DNA of 64,000 nucleotides from Epithemia pelagica. Lineage: Eukaryota > Protista > Bacillariophyta. Under the pieces are notes generated by a model. The model saw nothing but the letters and a program-made list of their open reading frames with translations, was not told the DNA's origin and ran no database searches. Made by a program: the position numbers and the translations under genes. The DNA lies in NCBI GenBank assembly GCA_946965045.2, contig OX337229.1:2418001-2482000 (forward strand), written 5' to 3'. Numbering within the stretch: the stretch's first letter is position 1; every line of letters starts with the position of its first letter. This document shows positions 3 through 64,000 of the stretch, piece by piece.

Positions 3-1959
3 GCCGCCATACACCTCAACCTGGTCGTCCGCCACAAGGCAAACCACCAGGAAGAAGCGGCTCTCCCACGTATCACAGAAAACGCCCTGAAACAACACTT
101 CAACCAAGTCTTCCAACACCATGAACCGCGCGAGTACCCCATGTGGCTACAGGTCCACCGCGTAGAGTTCATCGAAACAAAACAACCAGCCCGACCGAAA
201 GGAAACAACGAAAAAGGACAACGCGGCCATAGTTCATCCTTCCACCTCACCCTGCGTCTGGCACCAGCAAACGACGCCTTTGATATGGAAAACTACATCG
301 AACAAGCCCTACGCTTCGCCACACAAATGTGGCACAAACACCACCGCGACGATTTTCGCAACGATGAACACGGTGCACAATGGATCCTACGCCATGGGGC
401 ACAACAGTCAAACCCGACACTCAACCCCCGCTTCAAGGAGTTAGACGTCTACATCCCTGCATGCAACAACCGAAACTCAACGACGCAAGGAATTATCGCA
501 GGAATTCCTGCACTCGCGGTCAAACACCGCCGCGGATACCTCGACATCGCCACCACCATCCATGATCACCTTTTCGGCCACCTCCCCAGCCAATTTCAAA
601 TGTTCGATGATTTCAGCCAACATTTCGGTTGCAGAGACGGCACCTTCAGCGGAGACATGCGCAACAAACAACGAGGCCAGGTGCCAGTCATCTACTTCTC
701 CGCGTCTTCGAGACACAACTTTGAATTATTCCTCCGCGCCTACAACGCCTTCCACCAGGCCGCCAAGGGAAACGAAATCACTTGGCGCGAAAACGCCCTA
801 CAAGTGCTTCCCATCCCGAAGAACCAACAAACCAGAACCACCACTCTCGAGGCTCTAAAGGACCTTGACCAACATTTCGGAGCAGCGTCAGAATTCGCCT
901 TCACCCACTGAACGATTTGGCCACAGAAGAAGAATGGGACCAACTCACCGAGATCCCACACTACCAGGCCGCATATCCCGAATTTTGCCACCACGACCCG
1001 GAGCCAGTCGCATACTACCTGCATCTGCTCCGCACACCTGACACCCACCATCTCAATGCAACAACCATAAGGAACTATCCGGGGTTTCCATCGAACATCC
1101 TTCGCCCCACCATGGCGGCAGCAGCCGCAGCACCACCAGCCCCAGGCCAAGAACACAACAACTACGAACAACACCAACAGGCCACACACACTTCGCGACT
1201 ACTCGATCTCACCCGCCGGATCACCCAACGAAACCAGAACAACGGAGACAGCGGCGGCAGCACCACAACAACAACAACACCCACACGACCAAGAGCCACC
1301 CCACCAACAACAACTCCCCCCCCCCGAGAAAAAGAGCAGCACCGTCCAACGACACACCAGAAAACAACGACCACGAAAACAACAGCGACCCTTACGAAGA
1401 CAACTCCAACTGGACGACGGTTGCTGAAACCGCCGCCCGCCTGATCAACACCAGACACAACCAAGAAGAATACGAGGTCACAGCAGACAGCCAAAACACC
1501 TGCTCCACCTTATCGTCCACAAACAGATACTCCATCTTGGGAGAACGCCCGGAGGACTCTTACAACGAAGAGACCGACCGATACCACGGGGGAAATCCTA
1601 ACGACGTAGAGATGGACGAGGAAGAACTCGACGAATGGGACAACATGTCCGACTCGAACCGTTCCCACCCTCTCCTCCAACCAGACAACGACAACCCCGC
1701 CAACAATCCATCACAGAACACTTCAGAAGAACTCCACCAGATAACTGCCTTCGTGCACCACCACAACAGCTCCCAACTCCCCGCGCTCGAGGAGTACATT
1801 GAGAAAATACAGTCCTTTTCGACGGACACCGACGCGCAAGACGTCTGGGAATTCGCGGAGCGGCTCGTGAAACAGAAACGGCCGCCCAATTCCCACGTCG
1901 CCGGCACCCGCACCGGCCATGTGGGCCCGCATGAACCACAGGGCCAAGGGGCCAAATGA
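3..1959 (+). CDS. Retrotransposon ORF1 (5'-truncated), reconstructed across two -1 frameshifts
   Basis: The frame is open from base 3 to TGA 909-911. One extra C in CCC 904-906 joins it to ORF 917-1444, and one extra C in the C10 run 1316-1325 joins that to ORF 1537-1959 (PRKRAAPSND...SILGERPEDS). No recognisable domain. Confidence 0.55.
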
Positions 1960-4900
1960 GTACCTCAACCAAACCAATCAGACGCTGTCCAGTCCCCCAC
2001 TGCGACTGGAAGCCCACTCCCAACCCCAACCAAAAAAACACTCAAAAAGACACCGTACTCCAACTAAAACAACACCTGATACACTCACACAACGACACAC
2101 CCATCACAGAACACATGGACGAAGACTTCTGCCAACGACACGGCATGCATGTGTGCTTGCAGTGCAACAAGCCAAGCACTATCTACACGTCGCAAGGACA
2201 CCTCAAGAATCACCAAGACAATAAACATACTAGGACAATCACCAACTTACAACTAGTTCTCAACACGTACAGACACGCCGATGACAACACCAAGGCCAAC
2301 TGGAAAACATCCATCGAGTTCCTCCACGGGCTCAACATCACCCCACCGCCCATCCGGAGAACAATGTGGCACAAACTTAAACAGCCTTCGAGAAAAGAAT
2401 ACTTCGTCGCCTACAACAACATCGTCAACTGGATTTTGGACGCCACCCCGCCACTCCGGGAAGACGAAAAAAGAGACACAAGACCACACCCAGGACAAAC
2501 CGACGCCACCCCTTTTTGGAAGTTGATATTGCTTCTCGAGCCACTCCTGCTCGCACCCACGTCCACCACCGGCCACAAGAGACCATCAGACGCACTGAGG
2601 GCGCGCCACCAGATGATCAAAGAAGGAAAGATCCGGGAACTTTTCGACACCATCTGGAACTCCAATCAAGACTCCACCCAAAACAGCTACCAAACAACAA
2701 CAACCAACAACAACAACAACCAAACAACGATCAGCGACAACTTCCAGACACCAACCCCGATCCCACAAGGTAGAGTGGCAGCGGCACAACGAGCAGCGGA
2801 CGTGGGCAACTATTCCACCGCTTTCAACCGCCTCACCACCAACATGCCGACAGCAACACTGACTCCACAGAGAATCGAAAAAATCCGTAAAGACCTCTTC
2901 CCCCCGAGACGAGACCCTCCACCCGCGACTAGGCACCACGGCCACCTCCACCATCCCCCACCCCCGCGCCAGTTCCTGCAAATCGACAGCGGGCAGTTCG
3001 AGCTGGCCCTCAGACAAATGAAGACGGGAACAGCCTCCGGCCCTTTCGCGTCCTGCACCGATGCAATTGTCTCCATGGCCTTACACCGAACAACACGTGC
3101 GCCCAATTCCACCAGGCCGTACTTCCACAATCTCCAACAACTCCTCCAACTCTTGGTCACGGCACAGCTCCCCCCGGCCGTCCACTCCATCCTCGGTAGC
3201 AACTATTTTCTGGCCCTTCACAAGGACCCAAACAATCTGGAACGCCTCAGACCCATCGGAATCGGGACGGCACTACGACGACTCACTGCCAAAGTTGCTC
3301 TCGTCCACGTCTCCGAAACTGTTCGCCCACTGCTAGTCGCTGGCGGACAATACGGCATACAAGTTCAAGGCGGAATTGACTTTGTCGCCCACACAACGAC
3401 GGCCGCAGTCCACAAGTACATCGTGGAACCGCAAACACCAACGCGAGCGCTCCTCCTCTTGGACCTCCACAATATGTTCAACAACACCTCTCGGACGGAG
3501 GCACGAAAGATCCTCCTCAGCCACGATGCCACCGCACCCCTCATCCCTCTCTTCGACATGTTGACACAAGCCGCAACCCCTTCGTGGTACTTCAACGAAA
3601 ACCACTCCTCCGACAAACTAATGCAAACAGAAGGCTTCCCCCAGGGCTGCCCCCTCAGCCCCCTCTTCTCCTGTCTGGTCCTGGAAGCCCTTACCACCAA
3701 AATCAACAACGAACAAAGACTCCGCGCGGCAGCAAGACTCAGGTCGGGCAACACACATGACGACGGCAAGGGAGGCCAGGCCCACACGGCCTCCATCATG
3801 GACGATACGTCCATTTGCCTCCCCCACGAAGACCTCCCCTGGTTCCTCCAACGATTCGAAGAACTCGGGCGGCCTTTGGGGGTGGACCTCAATAAACAAA
3901 AAACACTCATCCTTACCACAACAACGGGTATCTCCCCAACCAACTCCCTCCCCATTGAAAACAAACAATGCCTGAGACAAGCCCTCACCATGTTAGATCC
4001 ACAACACCCGGACCACCGAGAAATCACCGGCGGGACGCGTTTCTTAGGACAACCAATCGGGTCCCAGGACTTCGCACGCCAGTTCATCACTCTTAGACTC
4101 AAAACCATGGCGGCCAAGATGGAACTCCTTGCGCACCTTCCTGACCTCCAGACTCGCAGCCACCTCTTCCGCTACTCGGTGGTGCCCTCCATTCTGCATC
4201 TCCTTCCCGCCGACCTCGTCATCGCCCACCCGGCTCCACAAGCCACCACCACCAACTGGGACAGCCCCACGACCAAGACAACACAACTCCTCGTCACCAA
4301 ATTTCTGGCCATGCTCACGGCCCTTCCAACGACCGACATCACTGCAACTGCCATCTTAATCGCCACACTGCCAAACCGATTGGGCGGGCTGGGCTATAAC
4401 AGTGCCTCGGCCGCCGCGAGACCGTCTCTCATCACCCAGACAGCCCGAACCATCAAAATCGCTGCCTCCACGGAAACACCAGTCCCTGCCCCCCACAAAC
4501 TGTTCTGGTCCGACTGGGAACACAGCGAACTCCCCTGGATTGTCGCATACCGCCGTTCCCTGGCCCTGTTCGCCAATGAATTCGCCCCCGACGCCATCAG
4601 CAATCCAACACGATTTGACCACACCACCCATAGACACCTCCTCCACCACACCTTCGTGGAGCACACCGTCCCGGCCTTGATCGAGGCCACACCAGCTGAC
4701 ATGCGCCCGTCTCTTCCTTCGGCCCTGTCCCCTCTCACGAGCCTGGCGTTGCACCTCCCCAGAACTGCCGAAGCCTTCCGCCTCGACAACGCCACTTTCG
4801 CTACCGCTATCAAGCGCAAACTCCGCCTCCCAGTCTTGCCCGCCTCCTTCCGCCGCCGACGTTGCCATTGCCCTGCCTCGCCGATGTTGGATCCCGAAGG

Positions 4901-50332: not shown

Positions 50333-53300
50333 CTAGTTGTTACCCTTTTTCTCTCGAATTCTACGCATGCGTTCTTGGTGTCGCTCCATGGCCATTTCAT
50401 TGCGCTTCTGCACGGAAACAGGAGCAGCAGCCGATGCCGAGGCTCCTTCGTATCGTTGTGTCATCTTCTCAAGGAGAAGCGACTCCTTGCCCTTGAATTT
50501 CTCCATGATAATGTCGATGCGATCAACTTTTCCACTATCATACTTCTCCAAGAGTTCAAGAACCTTCGTTCGAACCTCGTCCGCCCCTGCTTGACTTTCT
50601 TCCGGTGGAGCAGCAACATCTTTGTTGGGTCTCGCAATTGGTTTCGAGCGGGGAAGAGACGATGAGGAGGAGTTCGTCGCTGCTCCACTTCTTGCCCCAA
50701 GAACTTGGTCTCGACGAGAGCGGACTGCGGCAGCCGCGGATGCATTTTGGTTTTGCCGCATCTGTTTCTTAACATTCTCGAGTTCGTTCTCTTTGTCCTC
50801 CATTTGCTTTTCAAGGCTCTGGAGTTTCCCTGCTGACTTTGCTAGCTGCTGTTGGACTATACGGAGCTCTTTCCTAGACTTGTCCAATTCCTCCATGGCG
50901 TCCTCCCGTGCCGATTTCTCTTTTTCCCATCGTTTGGCCATATCAGCATTGTTCTTTCGGAGGACTTCCAATGTTTTCGTGTCCGACTTGTTTTGTTGCC
51001 GGGTCTTGGACAAATTTGCGAGTTTGTCTTGGACACGAGTATTATCTCTCTTGAGTGACATCAGTTGGCCCTCGGTCCTCTCCTTGGCGCGTGTGAGCGA
51101 GCGCATTTCTTCGGTTAATGCCTTGACAGTCTCTTCCAAGTTCTTCGACGTAACATTTCTCTGCGCGGCTCCAATCTGAATTCGCCGTACGCGGGTTGCG
51201 AATTGGAGGGCGTGGACGGATTCGTCGTGAGATAGATCCACGGGAGAAATCGCTGCGACCATCATAGTTCTCGAGTTTCCACCCAGAGAATCTTGTAGCA
51301 AGTACGTAAGCTTTGAGTCACGATATGGGACGTGGGAGGACTTTCGGTCGAGAGCTTCCATGACATTTCCAAGAGCTGACAGACTCTTATTGATGAAACC
51401 AGCCTCTTTCAGTTGATCACCTTCCACCTTACTTTTCCTGACTCGCTCAGATCCGGCAAGATCGACCAAATACAGGGTTCCCTTATTCTGCTGGGCATCA
51501 CCAATACCAGAGTATACGTCGACAATCAGTACCATGTGTGAACGACTACTGTGTTCATTCATGTCGGTAGACGCAGTGGCTCTGTTACTGTTACCACGTT
51601 TCAACAGGTCCATGACTTCTTGAATACTTGTCACCTTCTCTTTCGTGAGGTTTGGAACCTCGATCCTTCCGTTCTTCTCGCGACGCACATCCAATGACGC
51701 CTTGCCGCCAGCCTTCATTGCGCCCTCCTTTTTATCTGCCATTGTCGCTCCACCATCAGACGTGAGCAAGTCATAAACTTCATCGTTGTAGATTTCCAGC
51801 ATTCCAAGTTCAAGTGAAAAAGTGAACGACACTTGTTCGGCAGGCTGCTCGGGATTGTCGCTCACAAACATCTCCGCAGCACGTTGTTGTTGGGCACGAA
51901 GACTGAGAAGGTGGAAAATCTTTTGGATCGTTCGGTAGCTGATACCGTATTGATTGTTCTCTGAAAGTCCTTCCATGGTAAAAGTTTTACCACTTCCTGT
52001 TTGACCATAGGCAAAAATACAGGCGTTGTAGCCATCCACAACAGAGAGCGCCAAAGGTTCAACGTCCTGGAACACACGTTGTTGCGACTGATCTGGACCC
52101 CAAACACGATCGAATGCAAAACTCTTCCACTTATTCGTGCGTTCATCAAAACAACCGACTTCAGTTTCACTGAGAGCCTCAACGACAGTTTTGCTTCCGG
52201 CTTGCATTTCTCCGACAGTTAGCGGACGGATACGACAGTACACTTGAATATTCCCTTGCAAATGAAGCATTTTACTCAGGAGTTGAGCATTGTATTCTCG
52301 CTGATCCTTCACTTTCTTGTCCAAATTCTTGATCTCTTTCGCCATCAATTCGGTATCGTTGGATTTGATGACGGAATCAATTTTGGAAGCTTCCGTGTCA
52401 TCAATTTCCATTGCTTCGGATCCCTTTTCTTTGCTGGCGAGCGAACTTAGACGCGACATTTGAGTGACCACAGCGGTTTCACCCCCATTCGAGAACAATT
52501 CTTTTTGCAGAATCTTTAGATCGGACTCCAGTCGCTTACTTCTCACTTCCGCCATGCGTTTTTGATCCATTAGAGCATCGTAGTCTTTCTGCAACTTGTT
52601 CAACTTTTTGGTCTCCTCGTCCAGACGCTGTTTCAACCGCATGACCGAGGTGGGTGAGTTGGAGCGTGCCCTCGGTCGATCAATCGATCGAACTTGTCGA
52701 GGTGTGGGTGCCTCGTCCATATTCAAAAGCTCTTCCCTATCAATGCTTTCGGTGGAAATAGTCTTTGCCATGGGAGTTTTGGCAGTTTTCTCAGGGAACG
52801 ACATGGCTTTGGCCGCACTCTCTTTCTCACGTCGAAGCACAATAACATTTGCTTCTGCTTCCGCCAACTGTCCCTTGGTGATGTGCAGGTCATTCTCAAG
52901 CTTGAGCACCCGATCCTCGGTCGTCTTTATTCGTTCTTCAAAAGTGGCGGTCAGGGACGCCAGTTCCGTGTCCTTGTCCGACAATTCGGTCTTTAGTCGG
53001 GCCAGTTGCGACTGCAACTGCTTCACGAGCTCACTTTCGGCATCCGCCACACCTTGTGTCTGACGATCTTTGGCGGCCGCTAGTTCCACCTCGGTTTCGT
53101 CCACCTTTTGTTGCAGTGTTTGGTTTTCTTCCGACAGCTTGTCCAACTGCTCTTTCATTTGTTTGATTTCATGTTCCGAGTCGGAACGCATTTCGTTTTT
53201 CATTTGATTGGCCATTTCGTCCATGCCCTGTCGTTTCGCTTCTTTCTTGGCTTCATCGAATCTCGAGTTGACGGCATCGAGTTCGTCAATGACACTTTGA

Positions 53301-54559
53301 TAATCCTCGCGTGAATTCTGCAGGGCTTGCTCCAGGGCCAACAGTTCATCGCGAAGTTTGCCATTTTCCTCATTGGCCGCCTTGACCGTCGAGGCCACCA
53401 TTGCCGCTTCCCCGAGTCGGGCGTTGGAAGACGCCTCGGCTTCTTTCACCTTGATTTGAAGTGCATTGACATCTTCCCGATGCTTGGCCCGAGCTTCTTC
53501 GAGGGCCATAATGACAGCCTTGGAATCTTGTTCCACGGCCTGAAGCTCCTCCTGTTGCAATTGGCATTCCTCACGGGCCAAGGTCAATTCTTCCTTGGTC
53601 AAATCCAAATCATCCCGGACGCGTTGACTTTCCGCGAGCAAGTCGGCATTTTCCGCTTGCAGATTGCGAATCAAGTCCTCGTCCTCCTCGCTCCGCTTGT
53701 GTTGTTCCAGTTCGGCCAAGGAGGCTTGGTATTGCTTGATTTTGGTTTCCCCATCGCCCAGTCGTTTTTCCGTCTCAATGAGTTGTTCCGTCACTAATTC
53801 TAATTCTTCCTCCAACTTTTTGACATATTCGTCATTCACCGGAGGCTCGGCCGCTTCCGCGGCGACGGGAGCTGCTGCTCCATTTTGGTCGGGGGTTTTG
53901 CCAGTTTCTTCCGCCTTGGCTTGTGCCAACAAAACTTCTTGTTGGGATGCCTCGAGTTCGGTTCGAACTCCCGCCAGCTCATCTTGCAGTTGCTGTTTTT
54001 CAACCTCCAGTTCCAGCTTGGACTCTTCCAATTCATTTTCCTTAAAGGCGAGTTCCTCGTGGACAAAGTCACACTCTTCCCGCAAATGATGGAGGGACTG
54101 CTCCATTTCACGGACCCGTTGATCGGCTTCATCTTGCGCCTGTTCGGCGGTCCGGCGAAGTTTTTGTTCTTCCTTGAGCTTTTGTCGAGACTCGGTCAAG
54201 GATGCCTCGAGCGATGTCAATTGAGGCGAAATGGTCTCCAACTGCGACGACAAGGCGGCGTTGGCGGCCGTGGATTCCGCCAATTTTTCCTCTGCAAAAC
54301 ATAATAATCAATATATGAAAGGCATTCGGGGGTGACACCACAAGAATCCAGGACAAAACATGAGACGACCATTCTTCTTGTTTGTGGGTCGGGTGACACA
54401 GTTACGACGACGACAACAAAACTTACGCATTTTGGCCAATTCGGCATCGAGCTCTTCCTCCAACTCACGAGAGGATGCAATGTATTCATCAAAGGCACTT
54501 TGCAGAGCTACCAGCTCGGCCTCCCGCTCGGCAATGGTTGCAGGAAAGGCGGACGGCAT
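50333..54559 (-). CDS. Kinesin-14 with NudE-like N-terminal coiled coil and internal/C-proximal motor (intron 54292-54426)
   Basis: Neck LQGNIQVYCRIRP, P-loop AYGQTGSGKT, NEHSSRSH and LVDLAGSER. The GT-AG intron joins LAKM-Q-EKLAES in frame. Confidence 0.93.
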
Positions 54560-55676: not shown

Positions 55677-56549
55677 TCACGGATTTTCTTTGTTTTCTTC
55701 TTCTTCGTCGTCTTGTTGTTGTGTGTCATACAGTTCGGGCCGCAATAATTTGTGTAGAAGGGGCCGTAGAATGTAGGCCGTGAGACCCCAAATGTCTCCT
55801 TGTGCGGTGGGAAAGACGGGTCCATGACGGAGCCGAAATCGATTGGGCGGCAACACCCGACTCGTTTCCACCTCCAAGAGCGTTTGAATCGATACAGCAA
55901 AGACGTGTTCCACTTCGTCGGGCGATCCGGGAAAAATATCGTCCAGTGTGGCATGGGAGAGCTGGGGATGCCATAAGACGCCCACCACGGGCGTAATGGG
56001 AGGTCCTTTGAGAAAAGACAATTGACTGGTGGGACCGAGAATTTCAATGGGATGGTCGTCCCAAAATCCGGGCCGGGGCAAGAGTTCTTCGGCCGTTTCC
56101 CTTAAGGCTGTATGGACGACGGACGCATCCGTGGCATCCACATGGCCGCCCGGAAAGGAAATTTCGGCCGCATGGCGTCGGAGGCGGGACGACCGACGCG
56201 TAAACAAGACGGACGATTCGCCATCCACCGTACACAGCAACACGAGGACGGCCGCCTGTTTTTGGTTCTGGTTGTTCTTGGTGTGGTGGTGATGGTGGTG
56301 ATGGTGGTCCTTGTGGTGGTGGGGGGTTCGGGAAACCGAGGACTTAAAGAGTGGAAATTCGCCGTGTTCATTCAAACAAGCTTGAAACCGATGCACCACG
56401 GCAGGCCATTGTTCGCGCAACTGACATGGTGGATTCGTTGTTGTCGTGGTGGGTGCCTTGTTGTGGGCCGACACGGAAAAGAGCCTCTGCGCCAGTCGAT
56501 GCGCCATCATGGTCCATATGATGGGAAAAAGTATACACCGCGTCGTCAT
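55677..56549 (-). CDS. Nudix hydrolase, CoA-pyrophosphatase (NUDT7/8, PCD1) type
   Basis: AAVLVLL..LFTRRS..LRRHAAEISFPGG..ALRETAEE (UPF0035 plus Nudix box) and IWGLTAYIL. The start codon is uncertain. Confidence 0.88.
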   Translation of the reverse strand: MTTRCILFPIIWTMMAHRLAQRLFSVSAHNKAPTTTTTNPPCQLREQWPAVVHRFQACLNEHGEFPLFKSSVSRTPHHHKDHHHHHHHHTKNNQNQKQAAVLVLLCTVDGESSVLFTRRSSRLRRHAAEISFPGGHVDATDASVVHTALRETAEELLPRPGFWDDHPIEILGPTSQLSFLKGPPITPVVGVLWHPQLSHATLDDIFPGSPDEVEHVFAVSIQTLLEVETSRVLPPNRFRLRHGPVFPTAQGDIWGLTAYILRPLLHKLLRPELYDTQQQDDEEEENKENP

Positions 56550-57029
56550 CGGCGCCAGGATAGGAAAGCATCTAAGTCGCATTTCGATCGCTTTCAGAAA
56601 TTGCGTCGCACCTCAGTCACCACGCGCCCAGACCCACATGCCAATCTCGCGCAACGCCACCACCTCATCCTCCCGGAACTCCATCGATGGGCATGATGGC
56701 GGTATAAAAGAACGCTCTTCAGCAGCATGTTTCTCAGACTTGTACGGTGAAGCAGCTCTCCACAAACGGCAGGAGCAGAGACGTGATGGCCTCACTGAGG
56801 AAAACAGAGCGAACCACAATCGATAGTCCATCATTGCCTTGCTGCCGATAGTTTGGAACAGTCCAGAACGTCCTGGGACGACGATACGGCAATCCATCCA
56901 GTCACGGCCATTACCAGCGTGCACCTTGACGACCAAACACCACCTCGATACAAAACGCCACGCGCATTTGGCAGTCACTCACGGACAATGCCACACAGTC
57001 CATTGTCCTTTGGTTGGCGTGATGGCGGC

Positions 57030-58422: not shown

Positions 58423-61400
58423 TTAATTCTTTCTTCTTCCCCCTCGACTGGCGAGCTGTAGTTGGTTTTTCCTTCTCCGGTTCACACCTCCACCATTGTT
58501 GTTGGTGGTAGAATGGCTTCGTTGCTTTTGGTCAATTGCCTCCCTGGCCCATTGGGCCTTTTCTTGAACCATGGTCTTTTCGGAACGCGCGGCCTCGTCA
58601 ATTAATTTGTCGGCAAATTCCGACTCCAACTCCTTTCGTACGTCCCGGACGTCACCCAACTCTCGGGCAATATCCCCCAACAAGGCAACCGCTTTGTGGA
58701 GCACTGCATCATCCTTGGTGCGGTCCGTGGCCAAGGAACTGAGAAACACGAGAACGTGCGGTGCGTGCGGAACAAAGGCCTGCACGGACTGACCTTCGGC
58801 CAGTCCCACAAGAATACCCGAGTAGGCTTCCAAGACGGAGCCTCGCAGCTTGTTCCAAAACTCAAAGACGGAACACCAAAGCTTATTTGTAAACGCAATC
58901 ATATCTTCATTGTTGAGATGGGGTTGCTGCTGAGAAGCTTGCATAAGCGCCATCATGGTTGGCTCCATGTACGGCTGGAACGCAGCACCAATCGAGAGGG
59001 CCATGTCTCCGAAACAGGAGATTGCTGCAGCCTTTACATCGCGGTCTTTTGCTGACCCTTCCCGAATCATGTGGAACAGAGCTTGCATCAGGTCATCTGC
59101 ATATGGTTGGATCAAGGGCCCAAGGCTTCCGCACAAATCGACAACCACGCCGGTGCAGATTGTGCTCAAACTGCCCTCGAAACTGCGCAATCCTGTCAAA
59201 AGCAATGGCATAAAATCATCCAAGTAGGTCTATGAACACAGAGAGTGAACAGGTGAGTATTTTCGAAAGGGAAAGAAGTATATTTTCCAAAGCCATTTGA
59301 TAGGAACGTACCGCAAACTCATCTTCGAGGCGATACACAATACTCCCAATGGCCATAAAGACCTCTTCTTCAGCATTGCGTACACGTAGTCCCTGCAGGA
59401 GCACCTTCATGATATGCTCTGTATGTCTCAGGACAGTGTTCTTTTCCATGCGATTGTACAAAACTTGGGTCAGAGCACCGAGCTGTCCAACCATTTGAGC
59501 TCGGAAGGTGCTCTCCACAGTTTGGAGCTTCAGAGTACCGTCCAGAGCAGTTGTCACGGTTCGGACCAGCATTTCATCCCGCTTCAAAGAACCCTCGTTT
59601 AGCTCAGCAACAGATTCATTGCTTGCCGAACTGAGGTCATTACATGTGGTCAAGAGTAAGCTTCTACTATTCTCGCTCTCTGTCAAAGCCGCGCTCAAAG
59701 AAACGCATGATGCTTGAATTTCTTCAACTTCGGTGTTCAAGGCTTTCTCACGGTTATTGTTGGACGAGAGGATTGCTTTTGCATCACCAAGCTCCTCTCT
59801 CAAAGTTTTGCGTTCCTTTTCTAGGGCACTCATACTGTCACGCAGAACCAGTCGTTCGTAATCTGAAACGTTGAATTCATTCTTCAAGACTTCCCTCTTC
59901 TCGTTGATCAGAACTTCGATCATGCTGTCATCTAAAGGCTCACCGTGATCCTGTGATGCGGTCAGCTTCGATCGAAGACATTCAACTTTCACATTTGGCG
60001 CGTTCCCATCGTCCTTCTCGGTTTGTTGAAACGACTCATTCTTTTCTTTAAAATCTCTTTCCAGGTCATCAATAACATGGGTCAATAGATCACGCTCTTT
60101 CGTCATTCGTCTCAGTTTATCGAGAGCATCTTCTTTCGCTTTTTCTTCGAGTTCATTCATCACGGTCATCTTCACCAATTCCTCTTTGAGCGATTCATTT
60201 GATGTTTCTGCCTTCTCCAAAGATGCAACCATATCCTCGAGCATTGTGTTGACACTATCGCATGCGACGAGAGCTTCATCTTTCTCCTCCTTCACCACTT
60301 CCAATTGATTTTGCATGGCCTCCAGGCGTGCTTTCATATCCTCGTTTTCCGACATGGCTTCTTTCCTCTCTTCGTTCGCTTGAACAAGTTCATGATCATG
60401 TTTCACACTCATTTTGCCTTGCTCACGAACTGCAGTGTCTAGTGTCTCCTGAAGTATCTCGATTTCTTCCGTTTTCTCTTCAATAGCCTTCAAATGAAGA
60501 ATTTTCATGTGCTCAATTTCCTCGCATTGTTGCTGTTGCTCACACCGACACTCTTCCAGCTTTTCTTTCTGCTCGTTCATTTCATCTTCCATGCGCTGCG
60601 TGGTCAATTTCATAGAATCCACTATCTCGAGTATCTGATCCTTTTCATTGCGAACAGAACTGAGATCCGATTCAAGACGTTCGATTTCTTTGTCTTTGAT
60701 TAGCAAGAGATCAGCCGACTTTTTGAAACGGTCTTCAGATTCTTGTTCAAGTTGATTGCTGGCAGTCGTCTTAGTTGTGAGGTCATCCTTTAGTTTTTGA
60801 ATCTCTTCGTCTTTTTGTTTTGCTATTTCTGATACTTCACTCTTGGCATTCTCAAGTTCCTCTTGCAGCCGCCGAATCTCTTCATCCCTACACTTTTCGA
60901 TTTCCGATATGTGATCCTTCGCCCTTTCGAGCTCCTGTTTCAACTCGCTGATCTCTTCATCCTTCAGCTTTGTCGCTTCAAATGTGGTTGTCTTGTTCTG
61001 TTCAAGCTCATCCTGAAGCTGTTGAGGCTGGTGTTCTTTATCTTCCACTGTCTCCGAAGACACACTCTGGACTGGAAGGATTTCATCTTCCGCATCTTGC
61101 GGCGCTTTGCTGTCGAGCTTCTGTTCTGATAGTAATTGAGATAGTCGTTCGTTCTCGTTCTTCACTGTTTCGAGTTCTTTTTGAAGTATCTCCAATCTGA
61201 GGTCATTTTCCTGTCGCTTTTCGTTCCTCTGTGGTGTTTGTGCACGGCGTGTCGGTGTTGTTACGGTTTTGTGTTTGGATTTCTCGAACTGCTCTTTGAC
61301 GGATGCAAGTTGCCCTTGCAGTTTCTTGAACTCTTCATCTCTCTTTCTTCCTGTTACGGGTGACGGCCTAGATGTCTGGTTGAGCCTGTCTTTCATTCGC

Positions 61401-64000
61401 TTGTTCTCACCAGATATCGTTTGAAGCTTTTGTTTGGTTGACTCGAGTTCCTTTCGCATATGGTCCCGTGCCCCTTCTGCAGCTTTCAGATCTCTTTTCT
61501 TCCGTTGCAGGTCCTCTTCATTTTTGCGAATGGTGTCCTTTTGAGTTTTGTTTGCCTCTTGAAGAGTTTTGAGTTTAGATCTTACTTTCCCCATATCTGC
61601 ATCTTTCTCCCGAAGTCGTCGTATCTCAATGTCCTGTTGTTTTATTACCTCACCTTGAGACTTACGGGTTTCTTCCAGAGTTTTAAGTTCTCCTCGAAAC
61701 TTCGATATTTTAGCTTCTTTGTCTGCTAGCTTTATTATTTCGTCGTCCCTCTCCAATATGGTTTCTTCGAGTGATTTGTTCTCTCTCTGGAGACCCTTAA
61801 GTTCTTGACAAACCGCGTCGTGTTGGCTATGAAGAGAATTTATTTTGCTTGTTTTGTATGAGAGAGCATCTCGAAGAAGTGGGAAATCGAGAACAGGAAC
61901 AAACAAATTATCTGTCTTGGCTCTCTTCCGACCCGGTGTGAGTGTTTCGGGTGTCTGCTTCGGAAGATTGTCGAGCTCGGATGTATTAATGGGTTTGAGT
62001 TTTGAACTTTCGGAGAACCTTCGTTTGGCTCGTCTCTTTTTATGAGTTTCTCTTTTGAAAGACAGAATTCCACTGTTGATCAGAAAAGCATGAACCCTGT
62101 GAAGTTTCCCGAGTTTCCCTTCCGTCGCTCGCGCCAAAGAATCTGCCCAGGCTGCTCGTCGTTCTAGTACCTCTCGATGACCGGCTTTACGGCGAGCTTC
62201 AACAAGTTCCTTTTGAAGCCGACGAATCATTGACCTATCATCCAGAACTTCGTTGACAATTGGATTTGTGGTGACAAGCTTTGCCCGTGCAGCAAATGCC
62301 AACGTCGACCTTGTCTCCTCTAGGTACAGTTCCGACGGTGTTGCGCAACAGATAACTGCCATTCTAGCGTTTCCTGACAAGGATGGCTGAAGTATCCTGG
62401 TAAGCTTGGAATCCCGAAAATTGATATGGGTCCGAGTTGAGGATCCTAGGGCAACAATAACTCGAGATAGAGTCAAGAGACTAGAATTTGATGAGAGACG
62501 AGCCCATTCGCTATCATCTACCGGACAATCATAGCTTACCTTTGGTTTATCATACCTCCTTCTTTCTGACGGTCCCCACTCGCTCCAGTGTGTCGAACAC
62601 TCTCTGATCCAGCCAAGTCAACCAGATCCAAAGTTGACACAAGAATAGGACCGGAATTTTTCCCTTGGGCACTCCGCGGAGAGGCGACACTGTCATTGCC
62701 ATTTTTGACTGGTTCCTTTGCCCTACTTTCAACGGTGATGCGGAAAACGGTGTGACTTCGAGACGAACGTTCATTCATTGAAGTTGCAGCAATCGAGCGT
62801 TTCTTGTTCCCATGGTGAAGAACCCGTTGTAGTGCATTGGAGTCAACAACGATTTCCTCACGAGAAGGAACGAAGAACCCACGTTGCGGATCCTCACGAA
62901 CAGCTAGTTTTTCTTCTTTCCCTCTTGCAAGTAGATCTCGAATTTCTTCGTTATAAATTTCAAGAAAGCTCACTCGGACCAAAAAATCTCTGTTCCTTGA
63001 TTTCTCAATGCTCCGAAATATGTCGGATGCGGCCATTTGGAGTATCCCTTCATCCTTTCCACCCATTCCCGACCCCTGCATCGTGTACGTCTTCCCACTA
63101 GATGTTTGACCATAAGTAAATACGACTCCATTCAGTCCTCCTATTACGGAATGGACGATCCCCTTGGCCATTGACGCATAAACATCTTTGGTACCGTTTG
63201 ATTCTGCAAAGGTTCTGTCAAACGTGAAGAACGTTCTTCCTATGATCTTCTCCTTTATGGGCTTGCCCTCTGGTGTTGTTTGAGTCACAGACGAGTACTG
63301 CGGGAACACCTCCCAGACCCGTTTATGTTGTCCCTCGTTGTCATTGAGTGGGCGCATCCGAATAGCAACTAGAACAAAGAATACCAATTTGAGCATTTTG
63401 ATGCAGGATTTTGTCAGTATCAACAAATCTGGCTTACCGCGAATTCCCTCTTCTGTGGACGGTACCGTTGCAGAATCACTCTCCGGTGATTCTACCTGCA
63501 CAACTTCTTTCTTCTTTGTCGTTGGGGTAGCCAGGGTCTCATTTTCTGCAAATCGAATGCAAGATCCTGCTACAGACCGTCCTTTCTTGCCACTTTTGGA
63601 AGCTTGTATGCTAGTGTCAGATGATACTGTGAGATGTTTGCTTGGTGTGGTCTTTGGTGATAATAACGGGATAGCTGAGACTCGATGAGAAGACGAGCAG
63701 GTTTCTTGTAGATTTTCTGAATTGAAGGATGGTACTATGAGAACCAAACTGCAACGATCACCGCGGTATCATAGTTCTACACTTACCTTGGCCTTTCATA
63801 TTCTTCGATTCATCTTCCACTGGCTGGGACACGGTGTCTAGCACCTCGTTCTTTGTACTTTGAATTGTCATTCCTTTATCAGTATCAGGAATTTTCTCCT
63901 TGTTTGGGGATGGCACTGGTTGTTTGTCCGCATTTGCGTTTGCTATCTCAGAACCTGGCTTCGATTGGTTGTTGTGGTCTTGATGATTGCCACATGCGTC
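58423..64000 (-). CDS. Kinesin-7 (CENP-E-like) motor + coiled coil fused to the importin-beta C-terminal HEAT repeats; 5' end outside the window; introns 63717-63786, 63369-63437, 62481-62539 and 59230-59311
   Basis: Spliced motor: GIR|VAIRMRP, TYGQTSSGKT, NERSSRSH, LVDLAGSE and INQ|SLLTL. All four introns are GT-AG and frame-preserving. The tail matches importin-beta-type motifs (see findings). Confidence 0.88.

Follow-up and report, generated by a model that had tools for sequence, protein, structure and literature searches.

In the window, by which is meant the whole stretch of 64,000 nucleotides of Epithemia pelagica DNA that was analysed, a two-exon gene encodes a kinesin-14-type protein of 1363 amino acids whose N-terminal ~150 residues form a coiled-coil module most similar, among chains of solved structure, to the dynein regulator NDEL1 when searched with a pennate or a diatom-wide profile. 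Across pennate and centric diatoms this N-terminal module is as conserved as the motor itself, and its common ancestry with NudE is probable rather than proven on the strength of the alignments described below. The N-terminal end of a kinesin-14 is normally a cargo tail or a second microtubule-binding tail, and a search of the literature on NudE with kinesin-14 or on diatom kinesins returned no description of such a fusion. Cytoplasmic dynein has NudE/NDEL1 and LIS1 among its central regulators, and work on these proteins concerns almost only animals and fungi.

The positions of the gene and its features are collected in Table 1. Exon 1 translates as MPSAFPATIAEREAELVALQSAFDEYIASSRELEEELDAELAKM plus one base, and in-frame stops lie immediately upstream of its ATG. 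In exon 2 the reading frame goes on with QEKLAESTAANAALSSQLETISPQL...KLRRTAEQAQDEADQRVR, or (Q)EKLAESTAANAALSSQLE...KLRRTAEQAQDEADQRVR, and no stop interrupts its 1318 codons before the TAG at 50335-50333. The intron and the spliced N-terminus that had been claimed in the original prediction are upheld by the gene model, by a contig junction, and by orthologues, all of which agree. In the public run X3, a 535-base contig runs from position 54291 straight into 54427, so that precisely 135 bases, bounded by CT..AC on the plus strand, are missing from it, and no X3 depth is seen over the intron; the library type of this run is not on record, so the contig represents a cDNA-like form and not a proven RNA read. 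A second public run, X2, covers the stretch evenly, intron included. Natural orthologues, among them MMETSP transcripts marked as complete, share the joined exon 1-exon 2 N-terminus, and the objection that exon 1 might not be spliced to the kinesin is itself refuted by these orthologous transcripts together with the X3 junction. Searches were run with the two window exons one at a time; the joined N-terminus was represented in them by natural orthologues such as P0002 from Epithemia clementina and P0005.

Table 1. Features of the kinesin gene, in positions of the window; residue numbers are those of the spliced protein unless exon-2 numbering is indicated.
Feature	Position	Strand	Description
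Exon 1	54427..54559	-	Residues 1-44 plus one base; includes the AFDEYIASSRELEEELDAEL block; orthologues begin alike
Intron	54292..54426	-	135 bases, GTAAGT...CAG (GT..AG), phase 1; skipped exactly in the X3 contig
Exon 2	50333..54291	-	Remainder of the 1363-aa protein and TAG stop
NudE-like coiled-coil module	53975..54559	-	Residues 1-150, interrupted by the intron; NDEL1 (2V71) is the top PDB match
Acidic/aromatic patch	54446..54496	-	Residues 22-38; A22, E25, Y26, E32, E34, and D38 aligned to NDEL1 E36, E39, F40, E46, E48, and E52
Stretch matched to NDEL1 residues 100-153 (LIS1-binding region)	54041..54202	-	E94 at 54143-54145, R105 at 54110-54112
AFKENELEE block	54023..54049	-	Aligned to AFLESELDE of NDEL1
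Motif 2, DEYVKKLEEELELVTEQLIETEKRL	53759..53833	-	Residues 198-222; behind a variable acidic linker; accompanies the coiled coil in every architecture found
Kinesin-14-type neck-motor junction, LHLQGNIQVYCRIRP	52223..52267	-	Exon-2 residues 675-689; spanned by the PF16796 match
Kinesin motor domain	51179..52234	-	P-loop GQTGSGKT, switch II DLAGSE
C-terminal tail after the motor	50336..51178	-	281 residues; coiled coil and conserved end motif; no Pfam family
Conserved C-terminal motif, VRTKVLELLEKYDSGKVDRIDIIMEKFKGKESLLLEKMTQRYE	50447-50575	-	Ends the post-motor tail; kept across diatom orthologues; no Pfam family

Pfam searches with exon 2 identified a kinesin motor (PF00225, E 3.6e-104) over exon-2 residues 686-1037 and a Microtub_bd domain (PF16796, E 8.8e-28), and the best PDB matches of the motor were the kinesin-14s KIFC3 (6.7e-72) and KCBP. 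The junction LHLQGNIQVYCRIRP directly precedes the motor, the Pfam match of which starts at exon-2 residue 686, and contains a neck-motor GN motif that we take to be typical of kinesin-14. By its sequence the protein is a kinesin-14-type motor, for which movement towards minus ends is predicted. It shares with kinesin-14s such as KIFC3, KCBP, Ncd, Kar3, and HSET a motor domain that is closest to KIFC3 and KCBP, the pattern GN-I-x-V-x-CR-I-RP immediately before the motor, and a long coiled-coil stalk on the N-terminal side of the motor. It differs from them in having a NudE-like coiled coil where they have a basic microtubule-binding N-terminal tail, and in that the motor, although C-proximal, is followed by a tail with a conserved end motif of its own (Table 1).

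The extent of the N-terminal module is delimited by its conservation. In an alignment of 22 full-length pennate and centric orthologues, conservation was 0.67-0.88 over residues 1-150, 0.52-0.96 over the motor, and 0.27-0.65 over the remaining stalk, with a sharp fall to 0.27 past residue ~150, which is about where the coiled coil of NDEL1 ends. An AF2 model of an orthologue, computed from a 30-sequence alignment, consists of one unbroken helix from residue 9 to residue 164 (mean pLDDT 95), in keeping with the long N-terminal helix of NudE-type proteins (~160-190 residues). A Foldseek comparison of this single helix with the PDB returned no match, a result that is expected because the query is one single helix, to which Foldseek is blind.

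Since Pfam holds no model of the NudE coiled coil, comparison with NudE was made against a library of 177,635 PDB sequences, using the N-terminal 160 residues as queries. A single orthologue (residues 1-160) placed NDEL1 (2V71) at rank 1 with an E value of 0.0096. A profile of 16 pennate sequences again placed 2V71 first (E 5.2e-5, 26.4 bits); 2V66 ranked next, NDE1 (7E1T) was among the further matches, and all chains other than NudE scored at most 15.3 bits, 11 bits under NDEL1. After addition of centric and motor-less members, the resulting profile of 30 sequences ranked 2V71 first once more (E 6e-7, 32.6 bits), followed by lamin (26.2 bits, E 5.5e-5). The alignments to NDEL1 are collinear over ~150 residues and contain one 11-residue gap in each case; HMMER's own alignment is identical to that set out in the original prediction with respect to the register of SRELE, the offset of the Asn, and the 11-residue gap before the second block. 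Exon 2 on its own, and hence without the SRELE block, listed 2V71 at E 0.08, and exon 1 on its own had no match in the PDB library.

A profile built solely from the seven Thalassiosirales members did not recover NDEL1 from the PDB library at E <= 10; its top matches were FtsB and lamin at about 1e-3. The NDEL1 signal is for this reason real but thin. The concern that accompanied the original prediction, namely that the profile score might be no better than that of unrelated coiled coils, is answered in part: NDEL1 is the top match of both the pennate and the 30-sequence profiles and is matched from end to end, but the Thalassiosirales profile misses it. Pfam searches with both exons and with 30 module sequences returned no NudE family and only sub-threshold models of generic coiled coils, and no match to the NUDE_C domain (PF04880) was found in the window protein, in its orthologues, or in the stand-alone forms described below.

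The residues on which NDEL1 depends for binding have been mapped by others, and the chain numbering of the HMMER alignment was checked against the published residue numbers. Glu36, Glu39, Phe40, Glu46, Glu48, and Glu52 of NDEL1 are needed for binding of the dynein intermediate chain (PMC3013018), and mutation of Glu48, Glu119, or Arg130 abolishes binding of the dynein intermediate chain or of LIS1 (PMC3013018, PMC3101096, PMC10511499). In the dynein patch, five of the six aligned diatom sites (E25, Y26, E32, E34, and D38) are identical or conservative, the exception being Glu36, which is replaced by Ala, Asn, or Ser. Among 30 sequences, E34, Y/F26, and D/E38 are each kept in all 30 and E/D25 in 29, and the EQAxDD stretch varies among diatom subgroups. 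The Glu119/Arg130 pair of NDEL1 that binds LIS1 is aligned to E94 (30/30) and R105 (25/30), with an E-to-R spacing of 11 in the diatom module as in NDEL1. Only three columns are invariant across the 30 diverse homologues, and E34 and E94 are two of them. The columns aligned to NDEL1 Glu48, Glu119, and Arg130 are the most conserved ones in the module.

The diatom module resembles the coiled coil of NudE, NDE1, NDEL1, and Ndl1 (2V71, 2V66) in its long N-terminal helix (~150-190 residues), in the order and register of a SRELE-x-EL acidic block, an E...R pair 11 residues apart, and an AF-E-EL-E block, and in the variable Ser/Pro/acid-rich linker that lies behind the coiled coil. Its want of a recognisable NUDE_C domain is shared with yeast Ndl1, which has been described as a coiled coil with an unstructured end (PMC10511499). 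In contrast to NudE/NDEL1, the module does not end in a NUDE_C region but is fused to a stalk of ~530 residues that leads to a kinesin-14 motor. The stretch that separates its two putative binding regions has 11 residues fewer, and an invariant Pro is found at that point in the 16 pennate sequences. It also differs in the loss of Glu36.

Among other diatoms, the fusion was found in both pennate and centric lineages. The closest named relative is Epithemia clementina, with 78% identity in the kinesin and 91% in LIS1; further orthologues of the kinesin were found in Nitzschia, Pseudo-nitzschia, Cylindrotheca, Odontella, Rhizosolenia, Coscinodiscus, and Thalassiosira. An exhaustive profile search returned 247 clusters at E <= 1e-3, and all of the named ones are from diatoms. 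These affinities place the window in a raphid pennate diatom and make the fusion of a NudE-like module with a kinesin-14 pan-diatom.

The coiled coil together with motif 2 was also found in two settings that lack a kinesin motor. Stand-alone proteins of Thalassiosirales (P0136, P0439, P0149, and P0147; 318-510 aa), some of them from complete MMETSP transcripts, consist of the NudE-like coiled coil, a Pro/Ser-rich linker, motif 2, and a Cys-rich or CaaX-like tail (..CCIIS, ..CCTIS, ..FSCCVKRRNNGR) that could serve as a lipid anchor. Long motor-less proteins of 1384-2108 aa carry the cassette in Nitzschia inconspicua (P0157) and Cylindrotheca closterium (P0161) as well as in P0224, and no Pfam domain was recognised in them. 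P0157 goes by the name copper amine oxidase at its source, yet a match to any Pfam domain was lacking at E <= 1e-4. No motor-less copy of the cassette was found in the window's own genome, in which P0224 matches only the stalk of the kinesin described here. That the cassette occurs on a motor, with a probable lipid anchor, and on a long scaffold points to a unit that recruits a partner, since a mere stalk would be expected to behave otherwise.

The window's own assembly (60.5 Mb) was searched in six frames for the partners of a NudE-type module. It yielded a single dynein heavy chain gene (G000:C1:3904472-3905510, minus strand), which belongs to cytoplasmic dynein-1: against chains of that class its AAA1 region reached 328 and 307 bits, compared with ~230 bits at most against dynein-2 and axonemal ones. 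That no axonemal dynein turned up in the assembly is consistent with a raphid pennate diatom lacking flagella. The LIS1 gene (G000:C10:2315288-2316868; 1489-3069 of locus L014, plus strand) consists of two exons, the split falling within the first WD40 blade, and encodes a typical N-terminus (MVLTDRQR...LEKKWT) followed by a coiled coil, a Gly/Ser-rich insert, and a propeller that is closest to PAFAH1B1 among natural proteins; its orthologues are named Lissencephaly-1 homolog by their sources. Other matches to LisH were rejected as LIS1, namely L008 and L009, which represent a TBL1XR1 orthologue, L012, which is TAF5-like, and L011 and L013. The L009 locus (G000:C1:3046404-3049175; L009 2405-5176, minus strand) encodes a LisH-WD40 protein of more than 900 aa whose propeller is a close orthologue of TBL1XR1 (E 7e-129) and is set apart from the LisH motif by ~500 additional residues. 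Pfam six-frame searches did not find the intermediate chain motif (PF11540), the light intermediate chain, or dynactin p150, a result that does not show their absence.

A free NudE protein was also looked for in this assembly, and none was found: a six-frame search with NUDE_C gave nothing over the cut-off (the best weak match, L001, is a bZIP protein), and neither a narrow nor a broad profile of the module gave a second match. No other NudE-like sequence was thus found in a genome that has both dynein-1 and LIS1. The presence of these two genes means that the partners exist and that the module is not replacing a lost dynein. A prediction of the complex of two copies of P0002 residues 5-170 with the LIS1 propeller of P0272 (residues 118-483) returned a score of 0.00, which is evidence neither way.

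The best explanation of these observations, and one that we hold with evenly divided confidence, is a dimeric kinesin-14-type motor that carries at its N-terminus a NudE/NDEL1-type parallel coiled coil of ~150 residues that would bind LIS1 and dynein. This module would be the diatoms' version of NudE. Because it is the only NudE-like module in a genome with dynein-1 and LIS1, the kinesin that bears it may link two motor systems. In such a protein, dimerisation would take place through the stalk, and the distal N-terminal coiled coil would act like NudE, with the LIS1 beta-propeller putatively bound at residues ~75-130 and the dynein intermediate chain, by its N-terminal helix, at residues ~20-40. 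The motor end would bind microtubules and, if it behaves like other kinesin-14s, would move or accumulate towards minus ends. By keeping LIS1 and dynein-1 on microtubules, the kinesin would carry or concentrate both towards minus ends, where LIS1 could be handed to the dynein motor as animal and fungal free NudE does. Dynein-1 at spindle poles would in this way receive its LIS1 from a platform borne on microtubules, and the likely setting would be the organisation of the spindle and its poles. Kinesin-14 and dynein cooperate in spindle and spindle-pole organisation in other eukaryotes, and the diatom spindle is unusual and acentrosomal. A comparable arrangement exists in animals and fungi, where the NDEL1-LIS1-dynein complex is transported by way of kinesin-1, so that a kinesin and a NudE-LIS1 scaffold together place dynein regulators along microtubules. 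The link in that system is non-covalent and the kinesin is plus-end-bound, whereas in diatoms a scaffold-like module and a motor of the minus-end type are one polypeptide.

Two other readings compete with a NudE-type module that binds LIS1 and dynein. The N-terminus could be a conserved coiled coil specific to this family that binds another partner or a microtubule-associated factor, in which case its likeness to NDEL1 would come from Glu/Leu-rich heptads through chance or convergence and not through ancestry. We consider this somewhat doubtful. In its favour, NDEL1 is not recovered with the Thalassiosirales profile, E values of generic coiled coils come to 1e-3 to 5e-5 in the PDB profile searches, and single members of the module match Pfam coiled-coil families at 1e-5 to 1e-6. 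The NUDE_C domain is absent, and the bias (composition) correction that HMMER applies to the NDEL1 match is large, at 29-31 bits for the pennate and 30-sequence profiles. Furthermore, the feature neighbours of the module in the ESM Atlas, whether all clusters or only named clusters are considered, are generic coiled-coil families from which NudE and NUDE_C are missing. Several observations speak against this reading. With the pennate profile NDEL1 stands 11 bits over any other solved chain, at full length and with one gap, and the E-to-R spacing of 11 is that of NDEL1. Two invariant acidic columns fall on two experimentally critical glutamates; by our own rough estimate, the chance that two of three invariant columns would lie on the 8 functional sites among ~150 aligned positions is ~0.007. 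The genome, moreover, has LIS1 and dynein-1 and no other candidate for NudE. Overall, the interpretation of the module as NudE-like is supported in part.

Alternatively, the module could descend from NudE and now serve mainly as a dimerisation element or stalk end, or as a binder of one partner, in an ordinary spindle kinesin-14 that is not physically coupled to dynein. This reading is unlikely in our estimation. It would accord with the loss of Glu36 and the variability of the EQAxDD stretch among subgroups, with the failure to find the intermediate chain motif PF11540 in the genome, and with the existence, in Thalassiosirales and Bacillariaceae, of motor-less cassette proteins that could fill the role of a free NudE. 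Against this, the module is conserved as highly as the motor in pennates and centrics alike, beyond what dimerisation would call for; the invariant positions comprise glutamates at the surface and an arginine in addition to core leucines; and no motor-less copy was found in the window's own genome.

If the kinesin does bind LIS1 and dynein through a NudE-type module, a wider and more tentative proposal follows for diatoms as a group. They may have no free canonical NudE, the function of which would instead be built permanently into a kinesin-14, with motor-less proteins that are lipid-anchored or very long sharing it in some lineages, such that the hand-off of LIS1 to dynein-1 would take place on a second, minus-end-directed motor. 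Were this so, an obligate co-complex of kinesin-14 and dynein-1 would be expected, and the NudE coiled coil would predate the split of stramenopiles from animals and fungi.

If the module is of NudE type, the fusion would be a natural 'Rosetta stone' that directly links the function of the two minus-end motor systems by which spindle poles are organised. The range of NudE would then take in stramenopiles, and E34, E94, and R105 would offer a mutable handle for diatom cell biology. Even if kinship with NudE should fail, a module of 150 residues that is conserved at the level of the motor and occurs in three architectures marks a partner-binding site that is worth mapping.

Two further coding regions lie near the kinesin in the window, both on the minus strand. 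A neighbouring gene at 59216-62476 and 58423-59223 encodes another kinesin, whose coiled coil is very long, and an open reading frame of 301 aa at 55677-56582 contains a His-rich run and a Nudix-like GGHVD...ETAEE motif, as read from its translation alone.
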